64,000 nt of DNA from Podarcis bocagei (lineage: Eukaryota), in assembly GCA_964188305.1 (NCBI GenBank), contig OZ076899.1, one strand, 5' to 3'. This document shows, in pieces, positions 730 through 52,605 of the stretch (positions within the stretch are counted from its first letter, which is position 1; each line of letters begins with the position of its first letter). The notes under the pieces are model-generated. The model was not told the origin of the DNA. It made no database searches and saw nothing but the letters and a program-made list of their open reading frames with translations. A program made the position numbers and the translations under genes.

Positions 730-3700
730 GAGAGAGAGGACCCCATCATGGAGTGCCAGGAGAGCGAGGTGGATGTCTCCCCCTCTCGTACAGGAGGCTC
801 TTCTTCGCTTGCCTCTGGAGACCTTGGTGACATCAGCTCCTTCTCATCCAAGGCCTCTGGCCTCCAGCGCATGTCCAGTGGAGGGAGCAGTGCCTTGTCT
901 GTCACACACAGTGGGACAAGTTCTGGGCAAGGAGGCACTCTTCTGAGAGGAGGGAGACCTTGCCAAGGAGCTGGGCCTGGAGACTTGGCCTTCCCTGGGG
1001 TCAGAAAGCTCAGGTGGGTGCAGGGCCTCTGGGAAAGGGACATCAGAGGAAGGCTTCACTTTGGGGGAGCAGCAGGGTGGAAGAGAGAGAGGCCATTTTG
1101 CATTCTTTGGTGTTTTGTTTCAGGTGGGGCATGAATATGACTGTCAGTATATTCTTTAACCAGTTTCCAAACTGAAAGCCTGTGCGATACTTTTAAAAGG
1201 CCATGGGTTCTAAAAAGAATTGAATTTATTCACAGTTGGCGAGTTAATATTTTTGATGTCAAGAAGGTTTTAAATACTTGAAGGTTGGTGTTGTATTGAG
1301 TGATGTTTCAAACTGGGGAAACAATGTGGCAAATCATGTTGGGTTGCCTTGTGAGCAGCTTTATTTGGGCTTTGCTGTTTACCTTGAAATGCAAGGGATA
1401 AATTCTTTGTGCCCACAGTTCTGTGCCATGACCCTGGGAGCATGTGGGGGGCCTCCAGGACATTGTGGCTGGCAGGCAGGCTGGCTGTGCAGAGGTTAAC
1501 GCTGCCTTTGGTTTTCCTAGCCCTAGGAAGGGGGGCAGCCAGCCTCAGTCTCCAGTCCAGCCTGACCATGCAGCAGTTCCTGGGGGGTGTGAGGAGGAAG
1601 CGCAAGGTGTGATCAACCAGAGGAGTGGCAGAGCCCCTCCAACTCCTCGTAGACGAGGGCGAAGGGGCCGCCTCACATCGCGATCGGCCGGAGCCAGGTA
1701 GCGTGGTGAAGGTCAGCTGATGCTGATGAGGGAGGTGACCCTGGTGGGGTGGAGTAGCAAGAGCTAAAGGCCCTTGCAGCTTCTCCAGCTGTTTCTCTCC
1801 CTGGATCTGCAGGGCCAACCTACCAGCTGTGGAGGATCTGTCAACTACAGCCTTGCCAGAAGAGGACTGCCACACGCATCGCCCTTTGAAGGGGCAGGAC
1901 CGCAGCATCTCCCCTGAAATCCCCTTGCAAGAGCGTCTGGGGGTTTCTACCAGCACAGAGCTTTCCTCTGCCGCCACCTCCTCTTCTGCGAACAGCTTTG
2001 TGGGCCTCCGGGTGGTGGCAAAGTGGTCCTCGAATGGCTACTTCTACTCTGGGACTATCACACAGGATGTAGGGGGTGTCAAATATAAGCTGCGCTTTGA
2101 CGATGGCTATGAATGTGATGTTCCGGGCAAAGACATCTTGCTGTGCGACCCTCTCCCCCTGGAAACAGAGGTGACGGCCCTTTCGGAGGATGAATACTTC
2201 AGCGCAGGTAACTTGTCTGGCTGGCAAGTGACCTGCAGTGTTTGGGGTGGGCGGTAGCAGAGAGTTGGGTCCCAGTCTGTGAGCTGCCCTTATGATGCCT
2301 TCTGCCTTGGCTGCAGGGGTAGTGAAGGGGCATCGGAAGGAGGCCGGGGAGCTGTTCTATTGCATTGAGAAGGAGGGCCAGCGGAAGTGGTACCGGCGGA
2401 GAGCAGTCATCTTGTCTTTAGAGCAAGGGAATCGGCTCCGAGAGCAATTTGGGTTGGGCCCCTACGAACCCGTCATGCCCCTGACAAAGGCGGCTGACAT
2501 CAGCCTTGGTAAGCAGCCTATAGGCAACTGCCCTGTGGGTCTGGCCAAGAGAAATGGGAACCCCTAGGAACCTCTTAATTGAGGGCAGGAGCTGCAGGGT
2601 GCTGGCCTTGGGTAAACTCTTCAGTTTTAAGAGGCGCAAGTGACTTCCTTCTGCTACCCTGCAGAAAACATGCAGGGGGGGCCCTTGGTGCTGCTGCATG
2701 TTGAGGTGGGAGCTAACAACATTCTCCTTGTGGGGCTAGATAACCTGGTGGAAGGAAAGCGGAAGAGGCGCAACCTTGGCTCCCCCAGCACCTCCAACAA
2801 CACAACACCAACCCGCAAGGGCCCTGAGAGCCCCCAGACCCCGCACAGGCTGTCTAGCAAGAGGAAGCTAGTTGCCTCAGAAGAGGAGAGATCCCCTGCC
2901 AAACGAGGGCGGCGGGCAACCCCTACAAAGCCAGGTCAGACTGTTTTATGTCTCCTTGCATTGCATCTCTTCTCCCTGGACCAGACTTTCCCTTCTTGGT
3001 CTTCTCCAGCCTTTCCTCCCAAACCAGAGGAGCTGGAGCTGAGCTCTTGCACCAGGAGGATCAAGGCTCCCCTCTCTCTCCATGAGAGAACTTCTAGGTT
3101 GAGGCTGCTGACCTGCTGTCAGGAGGCAGCCACAGGACTTTGATTTTCCTCCCTCCCTCCACAGGGGCTGCCTGTTCCAGGGAAGCAGTGAGCCCATCTG
3201 TCAGTGGAGTGGACTTGGGAGATATCCCGGCACCAGATGACCGATGGGGGCCTATGCCCCACAACAAGACTCTCTTTCTGGGCTATGCCTTTCTCCTCAC
3301 AATGGCAGACCCCACAGATAAACTCTCCAGTTGCCAGGAGCCTGCAGTGAGCAGCGAAGAGGAAGGTGAGCACTCTATTGCTCCAGGGAGGTTGTTGGGG
3401 GCAGGGGTGGCCATCGTTGACTGAATCTGGTTTAGGGTGGTGAAACTCCAGCGGGTGACAGAAAAGGCAGAACTAGGAAGGGACCCAAGGGGGCCCACCT
3501 AGTTAAGCATCTTGTTCACATGGGGGCCAAAGGAAGGCAGCTTGGCCAAGGATCCCTGGTAGGGATTCTGCTAGCTGCGGTTTCTGTCCTCTTTGCAGGA
3601 TAGTGGTGTGCCTACAAGGGCTAAGGAAGTGGCAAGTTGTGGGGCTGCAAGAACTTGAAGTCAACAAGCCAGTATCTTACTGCACTTTCCAAAGTTAGTT

Positions 3701-6340
3701 TATTGAGGGGATAGTTGAACCTGGGACTTGGTAAGACTGGCTGTATCCTTGCACCTTGCCAGCCAGTGTGCAAGCACATCACAGGAGGGCTGTTGGGCAA
3801 CATGACAGTATGAAATCCCTTGAAGGCTACTTGAGGAGCCATACCAGGTGGCAGTCATGCCTTCTGCTATTCCAGGTCCTAGAAGCCCCAAAGATAAGGA
3901 ATGGCCAAGTGTGGGGCAGAACATGTTTGCCATCTTGTGGCCCTCTAAGAGAAATCAGTGATTTCGGAATGAGCTGCAAATCTCTCTTACAACTTTCATG
4001 CTCCTTACAGCTACCATTTGGGGCTCACTTTAGGGCTCAGAAAATAATTTCACTAACTTAACAGTCAATTTCTGAACATGGCTCCAAGTGTTGGTGCTTA
4101 CCTTTTAAAACCCTTTGCAGCAAGGGGCTTGGATTTTTGAAGGACCACCACCTTCTGAATGAATCAGCCCAGGTACTGAGGTCATCACTGAAGGGTCTTC
4201 TCTGGGTTCCCCCTCCTCTTAATTACATGGGTGCTGTCTTGAAGGTTTTCTTGGCAATAGCACACCCTTTTGGGTCACTTTCCTCACCTGTTACTACTAT
4301 CTCTTATGTCATCTTGGCACTAGGTGAAGACCTTTCTGCATTTCTCTAGGCATTTTTAAATGTCTAAATAATCTGCTGCTGTGCTGCACACACGTTCTTG
4401 TCAATTGTATTATTTTCTGTTGAGTATAAAAACAGTTCTTAGAGCACATTACTGAACAGTGAAGAATAATTTTTAAAGTGAATAGCTGTTCCTAATCATG
4501 TTTAGTCTCTGAACTGAATTTCAATGCAGTTGTTTTCATGTTCTTTATTTAACAAAATTCATAGTTTACAAAGAAAAATCAAAATACTAACTTAAAAATT
4601 GACAGAAGCAAGCATTTAAAAGAAGTCAACATGCAGCTTTTAAAATATAAATAAAATCTGAGATTTTATTGTGTGGGAATATTTCACAGTCCTCTTGCAA
4701 GGGAAGAGGTGTAGTGCTCTATTTATGCTAAAGAATTAACTCTGCTAACTTCATCCTGTTTTCTAGACTTCTTGGAGGTAACACCTTACAACAAACACTA
4801 CATTGGACTGCAGCTGCAAGCTGGAGGTGGTTTCATCCTGGATGACTTCAATGAAAGCCAGGTCAGGAGCCAGAGCTGGGGATGCATGAAGTAGCATCAC
4901 CCAGGTTGGCAGTGGAGATTTATTTGGAGAGGGTGTTGGTGCTTTGCTGCTGTTTTCCTTTTAATTATAAAATTGATGCTTTTCTGGGTGTGGTCCAAGG
5001 GTGGCAGGTGTGTGACGGGTGGCAGCTTCACCTGCACACAGGTTGTCAAGTGAGAATTGCCATTTGTTCTCCTTTCAAGAACTGGGATGAGGAAAGGAGG
5101 TGCCTGGCCATGATGCTTCTTGGAATGGGACAGATCTTGATAGGGGCTGCTTGAAGTAGAGGCAGAGAGAGCCTCTTTTCCTTCCAGTGGCACATTTCTC
5201 ACTTCTCTACTTCTGCCAGTACTGAGCCTTCCATTTTGCAGTTAGCCTGGCTGGCTAGTTGTCAAATAAGCATTTGACCACACTGGGTGTTTTATACTGA
5301 ACCTGCAGCCTCTTCCAGGGCTTTGTGTTTCTATGGAAGCCCAGGTCCCACCCTCCGCTTCCTTTGTCCAGTGCAGTGCAGCCTACCAGTGCTTCCTGAT
5401 AGCAGACAGACACTGCCGCAACCGGATTTACTTTCTGTGCCTTGCCCGAGGAATCCCCTGTGTGTCTCACGTCTGGGTCCATGACAGTTGTCATGCCAAC
5501 CAGCTGCAGAACTACCGGAATTATTTGTTGCCAGTTGGTTATAGCCTGCAGGAGCAGAGGTTGCTGGACTGGTAAGTCCATGAATGTTGGAGGGACCATG
5601 AGCAGCTTACCCACCTGGTGCAGGTGGAACAGGGTGGCATGTCCAGTTCCCTTGCAGTGGAGCTGCTTCTAACCTTTGCTTCCTTCTAGGCACTCTCGTG
5701 AGAACCCTTTCAGTAAGCTGAAGGTGCTTCTGGTGTCCAGTGAGCAGCACGACTTCCTGGAGCTCTGGTCTGAGATTCTCATGATGGGGGGTGCTGCTTC
5801 TGTTAAGCTGCAGGAATCTGCCTCATGGAGCAAAGGTACAAGCCCCTGGAAGGCAGCCAGCTGGTTTCTGTGGCGGGTATATTGGCAAGAGGCTCTCCGT
5901 TGCCCACTGAGACATACCAATCCCCCTGTGCAGAAAAGAGGCCTGGTGTGGGAGGAGCTTTAACTTAGATTCCAGAGGCTTGCTGAGAAGTTGGATGAGG
6001 CAGGGCAAGAATTGATTGGCTGCTTCACCCCTTTCCTTGTGTGGAGCTGCCATCCATCCTTTCCCAAAGGCAGCAAGATCAAGTACCTGGTGCTGTGAAC
6101 AAGCAAGAGGAAAGGTTTGACCACACAGGGCAATTCTTGTTTTCTATTTCCACAGATGTGAGTCTGGCTGTGTTTGATGTCGTGGTGACTGATGCTTCGT
6201 GCCCAACAGCTTTCTTGAAATGTGCTGAAGCGCTACAGCTGCCAGTGGTGACCCAAGAGTGGGTGATCCAGTGCCTCATTGCTGGGAAGAAAGTTGGATT
6301 CAAACACCCAAAGTATCAGCTTGATTCTGTCCCCAGTTGA
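730..6340 (+). CDS. TP53BP1: TP53-binding protein 1 (53BP1), last 10 coding exons (5' part lies outside the window)
   Basis: Exons 730-1013, 1521-1697, 1813-2207, 2317-2508, 2740-2934, 3165-3365, 4767-4861, 5372-5571, 5690-5835 and 6156-6340 (TGA 6338-6340). All are GT-AG and phase-consistent, 2070 nt in total. The translation contains the GAR motif (RRRGRRGR), tandem Tudor ([21 protein letters not shown]...FDDGYECDV), UDR ([20 protein letters not shown]), NLS ([19 protein letters not shown]) and BRCT repeats ([12 protein letters not shown]...[14 protein letters not shown]...[14 protein letters not shown]). Confidence 0.97.
4080..4345 (+). mobile_element. Old L2-like LINE 3' fragment
   Basis: Degenerate translation [25 protein letters not shown]...KVFLAIAHP resembles the L2 ORF2 C-terminus seen in the younger copies in this window. 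Confidence 0.5.
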
Positions 6341-6450
6341 ACCTTTTTGCTTTGTGGAGGCTGTCATTGTCACCCAGGTTTTAAATGTCTGTGTCACTTG
6401 AACTGTGCATGAAGTGCTGTATATAGTTTTAACTTCTGGACTTTTATGAT

Positions 6451-21897: not shown

Positions 21898-22075
21898 CAT
21901 AGCTGTCAACCTTCCCTTTTTTTGCGGGAAATTCCCCTATTCCAGCGCTGTTTCCCGCTGCTATCCCGGATTGTTAGATATTCCGCAGGCTGTCCCCGGG
22001 ACAGGTGAGGCTGCTGATCGCTTATTTTTGAGGCTGCTGATCCCTTATTTTCAAATCTGAAAGTTGACAGCTATG
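21898..22075. mobile_element. Short MITE (probably hAT)
   Basis: 13-bp TIR CATAGCTGTCAAC / GTTGACAGCTATG, inserted in a G-run. Internal ~23-bp tandem duplication TGAGGCTGCTGATCSCTTATTTT. Confidence 0.75.
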
Positions 22076-22229
22076 GGGGGGCTGGACCCCTCAAATATTT
22101 TATTGGGGGGCGGCGAAGACTCATCGGCTTGACTCCTATGAGGGGAGGGGGAAAATTCCAGCAAACCGAATTACGGCCTTGTTTCTTCTTGGGCTCGCCA
22201 AAATCCGCCATCATTGAAGGAAACGAACC

Positions 22230-23900
22230 TTCCCCGCCCCTCTTCTATCAATGTGCCCCGTTGTGAGTTTGATTCCTCCCGCTTTGAGGTGCCATCCCCA
22301 CCCCCGAGCATGCGCAGAATGTCTCCTCTTTCCTTAGGGAACAAGCAACCGATTTGCTACCAAGCAGGGCTGAAGCACTCCAATGCCTCTCATCACCGCA
22401 TAGTATAACTAGATCGCCCTGGAGCTGCCTTTATATCGGTGGGGCTCCCTCCTTCCCGAGGAAGCGGAGGCAGCTCACTCCGCGGTGGCGTCCGCCTGTT
22501 TGCTGCAGATCCTTCGCGATTGCACTGGGCGAGGAGTTAGCAATGCAGAGTTGCAAACTGCAACGGTACAGAACACCACCCCCGCTTCCCAAATGGGTCC
22601 CTTTGCCCCAGTGTCCTGTTTCCAACCGCAGCTAGCCCGGAGCCGCAACAAGGAGGCGGAAAGCGGGCAATACGAAGGCAAGACCTTCCTCGTCGGCAAC
22701 AGCGGGGTATCCTGCCTCTGGACATGGAGGTTCTCCGCGGAGTCGCGCGTCTTCAGGAAAGGGGCCGTGCATTGCCTCTCGGGCTCTTCTCCGGTGGGAG
22801 CCCTTTCCCCGCTGCGGTGCTCCCGTAGTGGCTCCAGCCGCCGCTTCTTCCAGCAAGTGCCCACTGGGCGGGGCGACCTGGCGGAGGCTCCTGCCAAGCT
22901 GGTTGGGCTGGGAGGTGCAGCCGGAGACACACCCCGCTGGGCTGGCCCGACCGCCGCGCCAGGAAGGAGAACGGGCGGCCGCTCCCTACCGCCTTCCCCT
23001 CCGCCTCCACCTCCTCGCCGCCGCCCAACGGACGGAGCGGACACTCCCCTCCCGCGTTCCGAGCAGCCGCCGCAGCCTGAGAAACAGCAGCAGCCTTCTC
23101 GTCCCGGCCGGACGACCGACGGGCTCCGACTAGACGGAACCGCCGCCGCTCCCTCTGCCTTGGCTCGTCCTCATGGCCACCCCGGAGGAGATCGACGGGG
23201 CGGGCGTGGCCCGGCCCCACTACGGCTGTGAGTCTCGGGCCGAGGGAGGGAAGGGCGCGTTGCTTGCGGCTTGAGAGATGCCTCGGGCCGTCGGTTTGCT
23301 GCCAGCGTCTCCTCCTCCGCCGGGGCCGCTTTGTTGGAGCCCAGGCACAGCCCTTACTGGGCCCGGAGGAATCGTTCCGACTGGCGGGGAAGGAGGACGC
23401 TGGCTCGCTTGGCCCGGGGCTGTGGGTTTATTTGGCCGAGCAGGAAGCCGGGCCCGCTGTGAAAGTCTCGGCGCCCCCTGCCTCCCCATCGCCCCCTCAA
23501 CATGGCGGGCGGGCGGGAAGCAGCGCTCCCCGGATTGCTCGTGTGAACGGCCTGCCTCGCCGAGCGGCGCGCGTTTCTCTCGGGCTCGTTTGCACGCGCT
23601 GTCGCTTTTCGCGGGGTTACGGGCTGGGTCCCCTGTTGGGCATCTTTGAGCGAAGCAGCCGCTTTCTCTCGCGCTCTTTCTTTTCCCGGGAGGGCCGGGG
23701 GGGGGGGAGAGGAAGAGGGGGAGGCCCGATTTTAGGGGCCATGGGGCGGGGTAAGGACCGCTCCCCTCCCCGAGCAGGAAGGGCGGCGACGTGCAGCTCC
23801 TGGGGCGGGTCCTCGGCACAAACTGCCCGTTCTCCCAGCTCCATGGATGCCTCGCTTCACCAAGCGCAGGAGGCTTGGCTCCCACCGAGCAGGGTGGCAG
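22230..23900 (+). promoter_or_regulatory. CpG island / promoter of IQGAP1
   Basis: GC- and CpG-rich block spanning exon 1. Sp1-like CCCCGCCCC near 22232 and NRF1-like GCATGCGCA near 22308. Confidence 0.75.
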
Positions 23901-26900
23901 CCTTTGGGCAAATAAAACCTCCATGATTGAGGGCAGTCTACCTTTCCACGTGGGCGTCAGCGGATAACTCGCTGGTCCTGTGAGGAGGAGTTTCAGGGCT
24001 GGACTAGATGCAAAAGGTGTCATACCAGCGAGGCAGTGCTTAGCCGCCCTCACATTTTGTAGGAGACACCTTGGCATCCCAGGGAAGTACTGAGAGCTAG
24101 AAAACATTTGGAAGAGTCCCAATATTTCAGTGTTGCTGGGCTCAGGCAACTGTGTGTTCCCTATTTCTTGTGAACTCTGTGGATGACACTCCTTTGTGCA
24201 AGTGGATGAAGCTCAAGGTTTCTGCCTGCAGCTGAGTGCTGGCTTTAGGCTGGAAATGGGTCTGTGTAGGGGGGCGGCAAGTTAAAGAGCTGAACCTTTG
24301 CTATAACCTGTTGGATTTCTGCCTGCTAATCCAAGCTACCCTTTCCATGTAGAAAGTGGGGGAAATGAGCTGTCCATTTTACATTGTTTGCCAGCATTCC
24401 TGCAAAGACCTGAAGGTTCTCCCTACCCCATTTCATCCTCCCAACAACCCTGTGAGGTAGGTTAGGCTGAGAGACAGGGCTGACCAGGGATCAGCCAATG
24501 AACTTTTGGGCTGATGGGCATTTGAACCTGGATCTCCCCACCCCAATCCAGCAGTCGGTAACTATTACTGTACATCAGTCTGGCTCTCTGTATTGGTGGC
24601 AGAAGGGGGATTTTTAAAAATGTCGAAGCCGTACTTTAAAACCCACATTCTTTCATAAGTCATTGTTGCTACTTTTTGTGGGTGGGCTGCATGAATAATG
24701 CTGCTGCCAAGTTCCTGCTGTGTCAAACTGCCAGGAAATGGCAGCATCGAAAACAGCCACAGGATCTGTCTACAGGCAATAAGGATGGTGGCTCTGTCCT
24801 TTCCTATCTCTCCAGGCATAGTTTCAAAGCTGGCAGCAGGAAGGGATTCCTCTTTGGCGGTTCTGGAACTGCCGTCTATAGAATCAGGCCTGGCTGGCGA
24901 GGTGCAAAAGAGGCTATTACTATTATTTATTAAATTTGTATACCACCCTTCATCCTTAGGCCTTGGAACGATTCACAGACAGTGGGGTTTGTCTGTTGCA
25001 GGGAATGTTTATGAGCATCACCAGTTTTTCTTCTGTGAAATGGGTACTTCGTGGTGGCCCTGACAGATTTTAAAAAATATATCCCTGGGCCCAGAAATGC
25101 TGGGGACCCCTGCTTTAGGGAGAGTACAGCCCTTCCAGAGCACGTGGAGCACCACCATCCTATCAGATGGTTCTTCTACCTTGTCAGGTTGACTTTTCAG
25201 TTTACTGGGCCTCATCCAGTCCATTATTGTTTCCAAACCCTTGCCCGACAGATATGGTTTTCACCAGTGGATGAGCTCATTCAGTAGCTTCACATATAAA
25301 GGTTGAAAAACATGGGGGCAGAATGGCAAATATCATGGGACAGAAGTACAGTCATACCTTGGGTTATAGCCGCTTCAGGTTGCGTGTTTTTGGGTTGCGG
25401 ACCGCTGAAACCCGGAAGTACCGGAATGGGTTACTTCCGGGTTTTGGCGGTTGCACATGCGCAGAAGCACTAAATTGTGCATTCGCAGAAGCGCTGAATA
25501 GTAACCCGCGCGTGTGCAGATGTGTGTTGCGAACACTGCGGGTTGCGAACGTGCATCCCGCACAGATCACGTTCGCAACCCGAGCATCCACTGTATCCAC
25601 AAACCTCTACCTGGAACTGGCCCAGCAGGTAGGAGTGGATGACCCTGTTAGAGGCAGTGAGGCATATGTGGGTGTATATATACTATTCATTTAAACACAC
25701 CCCAGAAATAATCCCGGGAACTGTAGTTTGCTATTCACTGAGCTACAGTTCCCAGCACTCTTACCAAACTGCAGTTCTTTGTGGGATGGTATAGGAACGT
25801 GCTGTCAATTACAGCGTGCAGCTGTAATCTGAGCCAGGACTTTTCAGCTCCAGGGTTGGAACTGGAGCATCTTGTGTGCAAGTCTTGCTCATCCTGGCTG
25901 CTCAAGGGGTGTCAGGATTGTCTCATTCGGATGACTGAAGCAATGAGTGTGTCTTGAACTGAGGATCTTCTCCCAAACAACTATGTTAAAGGAAGCTATT
26001 TTAGGATCCTCTGATTTAAATAGTTGCCTCGGAATATAATGTGCACTTGTAAAATATAATAGAATTGTGGAGCTGGGAGGGACCCCAGTGGTCATCTAGT
26101 CCAACCCCCATGCAGTGCAGGAATCTTAGCTAGAGCATCCATGACAGATGGCCATCCAACATCTTCTTAAAACCTCCAAGGAAGGGGAGTCCACAACTTC
26201 CCGAGGGACACCTTTCCACTGTCTTATCTTGGGTCCTGCAGGACTCGTTGAGAGGCGCAGGGCCTTTTTGGTTGTGGGGCTAGTGCTGTGGAGTACCCTC
26301 CCACTGGAGGTCCTCATTACCCCACCATTATTGCCTTATCTCTCCAACTAGATTTGATTGATACTTTTTTAAATGTGGAGCATGGGACTGTTACCAAAGT
26401 CACTGAACTAAAGCTGACTTTCCTACACAAAGGGAATCAGTGGGGATCTTACACCTGAGGCAAAGTGTTATAAATGTTACGATCTGTCAGATATATTTCT
26501 GTGGCAAATTATGAATATTTACCACTGTCAGCCAAACAGCCTGGTATTTTTAGATGCAGGGAGGGAAGGTGCCCTTCGCTCTATTCTCCCAGAGGAGTCA
26601 GCAGAGCATTCTCATGCCTCACTTTGGCCGGACCATTCCTTTTCTGACTCATGGAGAAACGCGTTTCTGCTCACAAACTATCCTCCCATGCTTCTGGAAG
26701 GTTCTGGGCACTGACTGGTCAAGATCTCAAAGTTTTATACAGAAAGTGCCACTGAGAAGCCCCGCCCATTTCCCAAAAGCTCACTTTGCCTCAAATCAAG
26801 TAGTTCTGTAGTGCAGAATCTCAGGTGTTGGTCTTTAAGGTGTCGCAAGACTCCTTGTCTGATGCAAAAGGCATGTGGGCTCCAGGGGCCGAAGTCTGCT

Positions 26901-51043: not shown

Positions 51044-52605
51044 TAAAAATAAATAATTTAATATTTATACCCCACCCATCTGGCTGGGTTTCCCCAGCCA
51101 CTCTGGGCGGCTTCCACCAAAACACTAAAATACAATAACCTATTAAACATTAAAAGCTTCCCTAAACAGGGCTGCCTTCAGATGTCTTCTAACAGTTTGA
51201 TAGTAGTTTTTCTCTTTGACATCTGGTGGGAGGGCGTTCCACAGGGCGGGTGCCACTACTGAGAAGGCCCTCTGCCTGGTTCCCTGTAACTTGGCTTCTC
51301 GCAGCGAGGGAACCGCCAGAAGGCCCTCCGCGCTGGACCTCAGTGTCCGGGCAGAACGATGGAGGTGGAGACATTTATTTTCGTGGCCGCTCAGACTCCC
51401 CTCCACCCTTTCCCTGCGTTTTGGCCTGTGTCTCTGCAGAGGTCGCAAGGGCTTCTCTTGCTTTTATCTCAGTTGCTGTAGGAATCCTGGCCATCAACGA
51501 GGCAGTGGACCAGGGAGATGTTGGAGTGACCCTGGGTTGCCTGCGTTCAGCTGATGTAGGGCTGTATGGCGTGACCCCAGAGTGTGCCGACACGTACCAG
51601 CAGGAGCTGGCGGAAGTCAAGAGGACGAAGCTGGCAGCAGGTGAAGGCGGGGGCTGGAGAGGAATGGGGAATGTGGTCTGCAGGGGCCTGGACTGGCGGA
51701 GGGGAGAGGCTGTGTTGGCAGCTAGGCTGTCTTTGGCCATCCAGGCCAGCTTTGCCTCCTCTCCCCGCTCTGCTCCTACCGGAGTACTTGCCTGGCAGTG
51801 TCTGCGCACATTGTGCCACAGAGCCCCACAGTTCTCGTCACGGAGGCAGAGAAGAAGGGCTTCCTTGTCCCCCGCCCCACGACATCCCATTTCTTCCAGG
51901 AGACAACGGCAGTGAGTGGGTGAAGCACTGGGTGAAGGGAGGCTACCATTATTACCATAACCTGAGGACCAAAGAAGGAAGCTGGGAAGAGCCCCAGGGA
52001 GGATTTGTGCCAAATAACACACAGCTCTCCCGGGAGGATATCCAGGTATGTTGCGCGTGTGCCGCCTCCTCTAGTCCTCAGCACCACCAAATCAGGGCCC
52101 TCTTGACCTGTTCAGTGCAAGGGAGGGGTGTCATCGCAGGGTATCAGGTTTGTTTTGCCCCCTCTCAAGTGATCCTTGATTTCTTTTGCTCAGTCACTGA
52201 CATGTGCAAGGCCCTTTATGACTTCAGGGGGCAGCTTTGGGTGCTTCTGCTGCAAGATTTTTTTTCGCTATTTCTTTAAAACAGAACTATGATAGAGTGG
52301 AGAAGTGGGACCCACCTGTCATTTGGTTCTTCCCCTCCCTTCCAGCTGCTCATTATAACAGCTATTACGTAACTTTAGCAATGGGTCTTAAGTTTGCTGG
52401 TTTTCCTCCTCCCTCCCCATCCCACTTTCCTTTTGTGCCAAGTCTGTTAGATTGTAAACCTGTGGGCACAGCCTGCTTTTCTAATCTTGGTACAATGCCT
52501 GGAAAATTGTAAGGTAGTAGCTATATGAGATCGTTGCAGCAAAAAGAATAGCCTCGTAGTACCTTAAACACTAAGAAATGTATTATGGCATAAACTTCAG
52601 GTGCT

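Follow-up and report, generated by a model that had tools for sequence, protein, structure and literature searches.

Replacement of the phosphate-clamping lysine in the BRCT pocket of lacertid 53BP1: a probable natural separation-of-function state

Can the pocket with which the tandem BRCT domain of 53BP1 reads phosphorylated ligands be disabled in a natural genome, and the surface that contacts p53 be left intact? The question is raised by a 64,000-nucleotide stretch of contig OZ076899.1 from the lizard Podarcis bocagei (assembly GCA_964188305.1), hereafter the window, which carries the 3′ end of TP53BP1, the gene encoding 53BP1; a preliminary description of the sequence had suggested that it can. 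Positions 5417–5428 read CGC AAC CGG ATT, in frame within an exon at 5372–5571, and the protein reads H-C-R-N-R-I where its human counterpart has H-C-R-T-R-K. The reading favoured here, and regarded as probable, is that Lys1814 (human numbering throughout) was lost in Lacertibaenia and that the window holds, in a single functional gene, a fixed natural separation-of-function allele of 53BP1.

The 66-residue product of exon 5372–5571 aligns over its full length to the human 53BP1 BRCT chains 1gzh_B, 1kzy_C and 5ecg_C (phmmer against the PDB, E ~5e-37); the human sequence aligned at the motif is HCRTRKYFLCL, and the chain offsets give C1796...R1811-T1812-R1813-K1814. Isoleucine (ATT, 5426–5428; + strand, as for every feature of the gene described below) stands at Lys1814, with which the BRCT1 T-x-K motif clamps the phosphate, and asparagine (AAC, 5420–5422) at Thr1812, where helix α2 starts; Arg1811 (CGC, 5417–5419) is retained. 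Six positions before the lost lysine, arginine (AGA, 5408–5410) replaces Gln1808, a basic gain specific to lacertids. Both the Thr (T1812) and the Lys (K1814) by which the T-x-K motif of phosphopeptide-binding tandem BRCTs is recognized are missing from the window and from all six lacertids; the Ser/Thr at the end of β1 and the backbone NH that follows it (T1737/M1738) are present in the window. We take T1737, M1738, T1812 and K1814 to be the places equivalent to BRCA1 S1655, G1656, T1700 and K1702. The codons, alignment to human HCRTRK and residue numbering given in the preliminary description hold up against the window sequence and the human 53BP1 structures, and alignment and exon coordinates confirm that T1737, K1773, R1811, N1845 and D1861 are kept.

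By alignment and phylogeny the gene is identified as orthologous TP53BP1, with Tudor, UDR and nuclear localization signal (NLS) regions followed by a tandem BRCT that ends the protein. The window contains its last eight exons, with GT-AG at all junctions and a frame that is open throughout. They are collinear with TP53BP1 of Podarcis, Lacerta and Rhineura at 94–100% per exon, and the identity of the BRCT region is 98.2–98.5% with that of Podarcis muralis, P. raffonei and P. lilfordi and ~94% with that of Lacerta agilis and Zootoca vivipara. The top protein-search matches are all named TP53-binding protein 1. In the P. lilfordi orthologue, which is 98.5% identical to the window over the BRCT region, Pfam recognizes 53-BP1_Tudor (E=2e-71) and BRCT_3 (E=7e-34). 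The tandem BRCT fold is recovered over 250 residues of the Podarcis orthologue aligned to 5ecg_C (E=4e-122), and the lizard BRCT pair is ~75% identical to human outside the changed residues. In a maximum-likelihood protein tree, which follows the species tree, Lacertidae, Lacertibaenia, snakes, Gekkota, birds and marsupials each come out as groups.

The change at the motif is also present in independent sets of reads. One organism was sequenced in two public DNA runs belonging to different studies (either may be the window's own source); the contigs of both span 4700–6400 in one piece and are identical to the window at 5417–5428. The RNA evidence comes from a related species: the raw RNA-seq reads of two runs carry a synonymous C>G at 5419 (CGG) in 8/8 and 10/10 cases and no difference at 5420–5428, the Asn and Ile codons being present in 18/18 reads with no alternative letters at 5421 or 5427. 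The splice joint 4861>5372 is spanned by six RNA reads, and loose read ends match the neighbouring exons. The protein searches gave one TP53BP1 locus for each lacertid genome, and a second copy with the canonical motif was encountered neither in the protein searches nor in the RNA reads of the related species. The preliminary description had considered a base-call error unlikely and had named RTRK in reads or transcripts, or a canonical second copy, as contrary evidence; the DNA contigs and RNA reads show N-R-I, and neither kind of contrary evidence was found when looked for.

That the motif is an artefact is next to impossible, whether through an error in base calling or assembly or because the locus is a pseudogene or an unexpressed TP53BP1 duplicate. 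Sequencing or assembly error is rejected on the identical codons in the two DNA data sets, the 18/18 RNA reads and the same or equivalent residues in five further lacertid genomes, each assembled independently; a pseudogene or duplicate is rejected on the intact frame, GT-AG junctions, spliced reads, single locus per genome and strong constraint on the Tudor domain. Nothing was found in favour of an artefact, except that one nearby base, 5535, differs from all read sets, a sign that the assembly is not error-free or that the allele is private. At 5535 the window has T (GTT, Val1850), where C (GCT, Ala) is found in both DNA runs, all RNA reads of the relative and all other taxa; this Val1850, which is either an allele private to the window or a small local mistake of assembly, has no bearing on the motif.

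Other peculiarities of the RNA data concern neighbouring positions. A G>A change at 5405 (Asp1807Asn) appears in 3/10 reads of one run of the related species (X24) and in none of the other, possibly as a heterozygous variant. In both RNA runs the introns at 4871–5368 and 5840–6150 are steadily covered by reads of a single orientation, which most probably stem from unspliced pre-mRNA.

To establish the distribution of the change, 1.84 billion representatives were searched without a profile, named proteins were searched twice with a word index, and clusters were looked up. Residues 1811–1814 are R-N-R-I in the window, P. muralis, P. raffonei and P. lilfordi and R-N-R-M in Lacerta agilis and Zootoca vivipara; all six lacertids sampled thus combine Asn1812 with Ile or Met at 1814. 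The amphisbaenian Rhineura floridana has R-T-R-L, with Thr1812 encoded by ACC, and 37/38 other taxa have Thr at 1812. The canonical R-T-R-K is found in skinks, most geckos, Elgaria, Varanus, iguanians, snakes except Candoia, alligator, marsupials and birds other than tinamous and Passer. Departures that keep the lysine are R-T-Q-K in Gekko japonicus, G. kuhli and Passer montanus, C-N-R-K in Hemicordylus and R-N-R-K in Heteronotia. Candoia aspera has R-T-R-Q. All five tinamous sampled have Thr (ACA codon) at 1814, as R-T-R-T in Eudromia and Nothoprocta and as Q-T-R-T in Crypturellus (two species) and Tinamus; in the latter three R1811Q removes the other phosphopeptide contact as well. The palaeognaths Rhea, Dromaius and Apteryx keep R-T-R-K. 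Outside amniotes, Lys1814 is replaced by Thr in Brachyhypopomus gauderio, Pro in Periophthalmus magnuspinnatus, Glu in lampreys (Lampetra, Petromyzon), Ser in hagfish (Myxine) and Asn in Styela clava. No teiid, gymnophthalmid or further lacertid protein was among the matches listed in the named-protein searches.

Since Lys1814 is present in 112/120 sauropsid and marsupial 90%-cluster representatives and in 125/145 family-wide representatives, it is strongly, not absolutely, conserved; in the sampled amniotes other than lacertids and Rhineura it is found in 32/38. The site is far from free to drift by chance, and independent replacements of its lysine occurred in tinamous, Candoia, two teleosts and cyclostomes. 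N/I as a common sauropsid state, which the preliminary description had recognized as a threat to novelty, is rejected on the 112/120 count. The same description had seen the change in one genome; it is real in the window, and it belongs to a state shared by all six lacertids, with Leu in the amphisbaenian and independent losses elsewhere.

The path by which the lysine was lost can be followed in the codons of nine species, whose genomic loci were retrieved and coding sequences spliced exactly (Rhineura via isoform X1). At codon 1814 Tiliqua, Liasis and Gekko have AAG or AAA, Lacerta and Zootoca have ATG, the window has ATT, Rhineura has CTG and two tinamous have ACA. By parsimony, a shared AAG>ATG followed by ATG>ATT and ATG>CTG takes 3 steps, against 4 for separate origins. 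Lacertidae and Rhineura are grouped at 100% support in the maximum-likelihood whole-protein tree, and both belong to Lacertibaenia in the NCBI taxonomy. Most likely, Lys1814 changed to Met (AAG>ATG) in the common ancestor of Lacertidae and Amphisbaenia; Met would have persisted in Lacerta and Zootoca and given way to Ile (ATT) in Podarcis and to Leu (CTG) in Rhineura, and Thr1812>Asn and Gln1808>Arg would then have been fixed on the lacertid stem. In the codon comparison T1812N (ACC>AAC) and Q1808R (CAG>AGA/AGG) are confined to lacertids, 1808 being CAG/CAA elsewhere. The preliminary description had stressed that Lys to ATT needs two nucleotide changes; the two changes are accounted for by a Met (ATG) intermediate that still exists in Lacerta and Zootoca. 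The lacertid K1814M/I state is probably more than 100 million years old.

What the replacement may do to the protein can be gauged from human 53BP1. In the structure solved by crystallography, T1737, K1773, K1814 and the backbone of M1738 grip the phosphate of H2AX pS139, and R1811 contacts the α-carboxylate of H2AX Tyr142; K1814E or R1811E abolishes γ-H2AX peptide binding and BRCT-driven recruitment and impairs foci of phosphorylated ATM (pATM) (PMC4688034). The standard mutant for phospho-binding is K1814M (PMC5065530, PMC7666136); this and the structural work (PMC4688034) agree with what the preliminary description had stated on the need for K1814. K1814M 53BP1 still forms foci (PMC7666136), leaves USP28 binding intact, co-purifies with more p53 and rescues Nutlin sensitivity like wild type (PMC5065530). 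R1811A loses USP28 binding; p53 binding is enhanced by both R1811A and K1814M, suggesting competing complexes (PMC5065530). K1814M or R1811A also abolishes binding to phosphatidylinositol 3-phosphate (PI(3)P) vesicles, and early foci form more slowly when the two mutations are combined (bioRxiv 10.64898/2026.04.18.710733).

The rest of the BRCT surface is largely preserved in lacertids. T1737, M1738, K1773, R1811, R1813 and L1887 of the peptide groove are identical in all six. The exon at 3165–3365 begins BRCT1 and retains Thr1737 (3299–3301) and Met1738 (LLTMA, 3299–3304), and that at 4767–4861 carries Lys1773 (4793–4795), the second phosphate-contacting lysine (PMC4688034). Exon 5372–5571 encodes the second half of BRCT1 and the inter-BRCT linker, in which the p53 contacts N1845 (5519–5521) and D1861 (5567–5569) are kept; the linker (1838–1862) is near-identical to human, differing only by E1855Q, I1859L and the private A1850V. 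Arg1811, required for USP28 binding in human, is present; the roles of N1845, D1861 and R1811 in p53 and USP28 binding are established for the human protein (PMC5065530). BRCT2 begins in exon 5690–5835, where Asp at 1883 (5751–5753) and Leu1887 (5763–5765) line the Tyr142 pocket, and ends in the last exon, 6156–6340, with stop codon TGA at 6338–6340. Asp is found at 1883 in most non-snake lizards and is therefore not specific to the lacertid clade. Beside that residue, an in-frame 3-nucleotide insertion or deletion in a Gln run at 5744–5750 (residues 1881/1882) varies among Podarcis: the P. muralis protein is one Gln shorter, about half of the RNA reads of the related species carry the deletion, and residues 1881/1882 are Gln-His in the window and Gln-Gln in P. 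raffonei and P. lilfordi.

Because K1814M and K1814E abolish binding of human 53BP1 to the γ-H2AX pS139 peptide and K1814M to PI(3)P, the tandem BRCT of lacertid 53BP1 is predicted to have lost, or strongly weakened, its reading of canonical phospho-ligands. The protein would keep its Tudor/UDR-driven recruitment to damaged chromatin, its R1811-dependent USP28 binding and its N1845/D1861 p53 interface, and the loss may have been tolerated since BRCT phospho-reading is an accessory function. By analogy with the human mutants, lacertid 53BP1 is thus inferred not to bind canonical phospho-ligands and still to bind p53 and USP28. Of the separation of function proposed in the preliminary description, the intact p53 interface is observed at the residue level and the ligand loss is carried over from human protein. 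Its further suggestion of an effect on USP28 and mitotic surveillance runs against the literature and is rejected: USP28 binding is lost with R1811A and unaffected by K1814M (PMC5065530), and R1811 is retained.

Selection on the domain was compared through the ratio of nonsynonymous to synonymous substitution rates (dN/dS). Among lacertids the value is 0–0.04 for the Tudor/UDR region and, for pairs of species, 0.29–0.46 for the BRCT region (13–15 amino-acid and 8–13 synonymous differences); BRCT values are 0.12 for a Gekko pair, 0.13 for a tinamou pair and 0.09–0.17 in deeper squamate comparisons. The lacertid BRCT ratio is below 1, yet about three times that of the Gekko and tinamou pairs. 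On a fixed topology, the ratio of BRCT to rest-of-protein branch lengths is 0.45 tree-wide, 0.71 on the lacertid stem and 0.75–1.6 on the within-lacertid branches examined, compared with 0.17 on the tinamou stem and 0.7–1.3 on some gecko branches. The lacertid domain is clearly still under selection, and these values weakly suggest a partial relaxation of the BRCT pair.

Several points weigh against the reading of an ancient, fixed loss of function. The shared-ancestor scenario is ahead by one parsimony step only, and sampling of Laterata is thin, with teiids, gymnophthalmids, Gallotiinae, Eremiadini and other amphisbaenians unsampled. The raised BRCT dN/dS comes from small counts (Fisher p = 0.02–0.13 against the Gekko pair); some gecko branches have similar BRCT/rest ratios, and tinamous, also without the lysine, show no acceleration. 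Relaxed BRCT selection was accordingly set aside as an established result, the counts being only suggestive. Finally, K1773, T1737 and R1813 remain and Arg1808 is new, so that residual or re-specified phosphate binding is possible.

This last point leads to a rival explanation, in which the pocket was re-wired rather than disabled: Arg1808 with Lys1773, Thr1737 and Arg1813 would still bind phosphate, or the groove would take a different, possibly non-phosphorylated ligand, and the changes at 1808, 1812 and 1814 would form a coordinated shift of specificity. K1773 does contact the phosphate in the crystal structure; against this, a single K1814 substitution is enough to abolish human binding despite K1773 (PMC4688034). 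The other pocket residues are unchanged in the six lacertids. A basic residue (R/K) at 1808 is found in 9/20 family representatives without Lys1814 and in 13/125 with it (145 in total; Fisher p=5e-4, with no phylogenetic correction), and Arg1808 is a possible compensating change; the enrichment, however, ignores relatedness, several of the nine coming from one group with near-identical motifs, and Rhineura, tinamous and Candoia lost the lysine without gaining Arg1808. Three of the ~11 lacertid-specific changes at otherwise conserved BRCT positions fall within 1808–1814, but by a rough calculation 3 changes in 7 residues among ~11 in 250 are not significant (~0.4 such triples expected), and clustering at the pocket was set aside as a sign of selection. 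On balance, re-wiring is unlikely.

A second rival, adaptive tuning of the p53 axis, is distinctly more improbable. Here a hydrophobic residue at 1814 would have been selected for relieving the BRCT pair of competition by phospho-ligands and so strengthening 53BP1-p53-USP28 signalling, as opposed to a neutral loss. R1811A and K1814M do raise p53 binding (PMC5065530), the p53 contact 1861 has changed in lacertids from sauropsid Glu to Asp, the human state, and the Lacertibaenia replacements are all hydrophobic (M, I, L), as against Thr, Gln, Glu and Ser in other lineages. The BRCT dN/dS well below 1 does not favour such selection, however, and repeated losses in unrelated lineages with varied residues fit a tolerated loss more simply. 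A broader conjecture, unlikely as it stands, is that BRCT phospho-reading by 53BP1 is dispensable in vertebrates and has been repeatedly dropped (Lacertibaenia, tinamous, a boa, two teleosts, cyclostomes), the lacertid groove being then remodelled (Q1808R, T1812N, Met/Ile1814) to a new specificity or to a constitutively p53/USP28-biased 53BP1. Were it true, lizards would be a natural model in which the repair and p53 functions of 53BP1 are separated.

Compared with known systems, the reading of a natural loss of Lys1814 has its nearest parallel in engineered human 53BP1 K1814M/K1814E (with R1811A/E), where protein and residue are the same: Met1814 is exactly the state of Lacerta agilis and Zootoca vivipara, and Podarcis has Ile. 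The lizard state differs in being natural, fixed in a clade, joined by T1812N and Q1808R and accompanied by an unmutated R1811, and its biochemical effect is a prediction. The tandem BRCT pocket of BRCA1 has an S/T ... T-x-K architecture homologous to that of 53BP1, of which lacertids replace both T-x-K residues. Changes at the corresponding BRCA1 positions are known as disease-linked loss-of-binding variants, not as fixed species differences. MDC1 and yeast Crb2/Rad9 share the fold and read a pS-Q-E-Y-COOH tail in the same way, a Lys meeting the phosphate and an Arg the C-terminal carboxylate (53BP1 and MDC1 are compared in PMC4688034); they need the lysine for their main function, whereas for 53BP1 such reading is an accessory to recruitment by Tudor/UDR, a possible reason why lacertids could lose Lys1814. 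The other orthologues without Lys1814 (tinamous, Candoia, teleosts, lampreys, hagfish, Styela) represent independent events with mostly polar or acidic replacements, and none has the lacertid combination of T1812N, Q1808R and a hydrophobic residue at 1814.

The protein, its fold and the role of the residue were already known; it is new that a whole clade naturally has the K1814M/I state and that vertebrates have lost Lys1814 repeatedly. Full-text literature searches yielded no earlier report of this natural variation. In this account the sequence, its transcription and splicing, the species distribution and the codon path are shown, and the biochemical consequence is predicted. The role of the pocket is debated, having been assigned to γ-H2AX binding, to retention of pATM at heterochromatic breaks and, most recently, to PI(3)P-driven condensation, and it has so far been studied only through engineered K1814/R1811 mutants in human or mouse cells. 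A lizard clade with K1814M/I and independent losses in tinamous and other lineages provide natural replicates. They prompt the questions of whether the function is lost, compensated (by MDC1 or Arg1808) or re-specified, whether pATM foci and heterochromatin repair are altered in these animals, and whether the p53/USP28 arm alone is enough to keep the domain conserved. For annotation, they caution that the T-x-K pocket of 53BP1 orthologues is not invariant.

The remaining features of the window lie outside the BRCT pair. The three exons at 1814–2207, 2317–2508 and 2740–2934, upstream of those for the BRCT pair, carry the tandem Tudor domain together with the UDR region and NLS; none is disrupted, and purifying selection on them is strong. 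An Rfam scan of the window gave no match, and a Pfam scan of ten long open reading frames downstream gave only a sub-threshold WW match, in the frame at 51584–52276 (+ strand; 25.6 bits against a cut-off of 26.9), which is probably an exon of a downstream gene. The GC content reaches its window maximum, 0.64, at 22001–24000, probably a CpG island or the promoter of a neighbouring gene.

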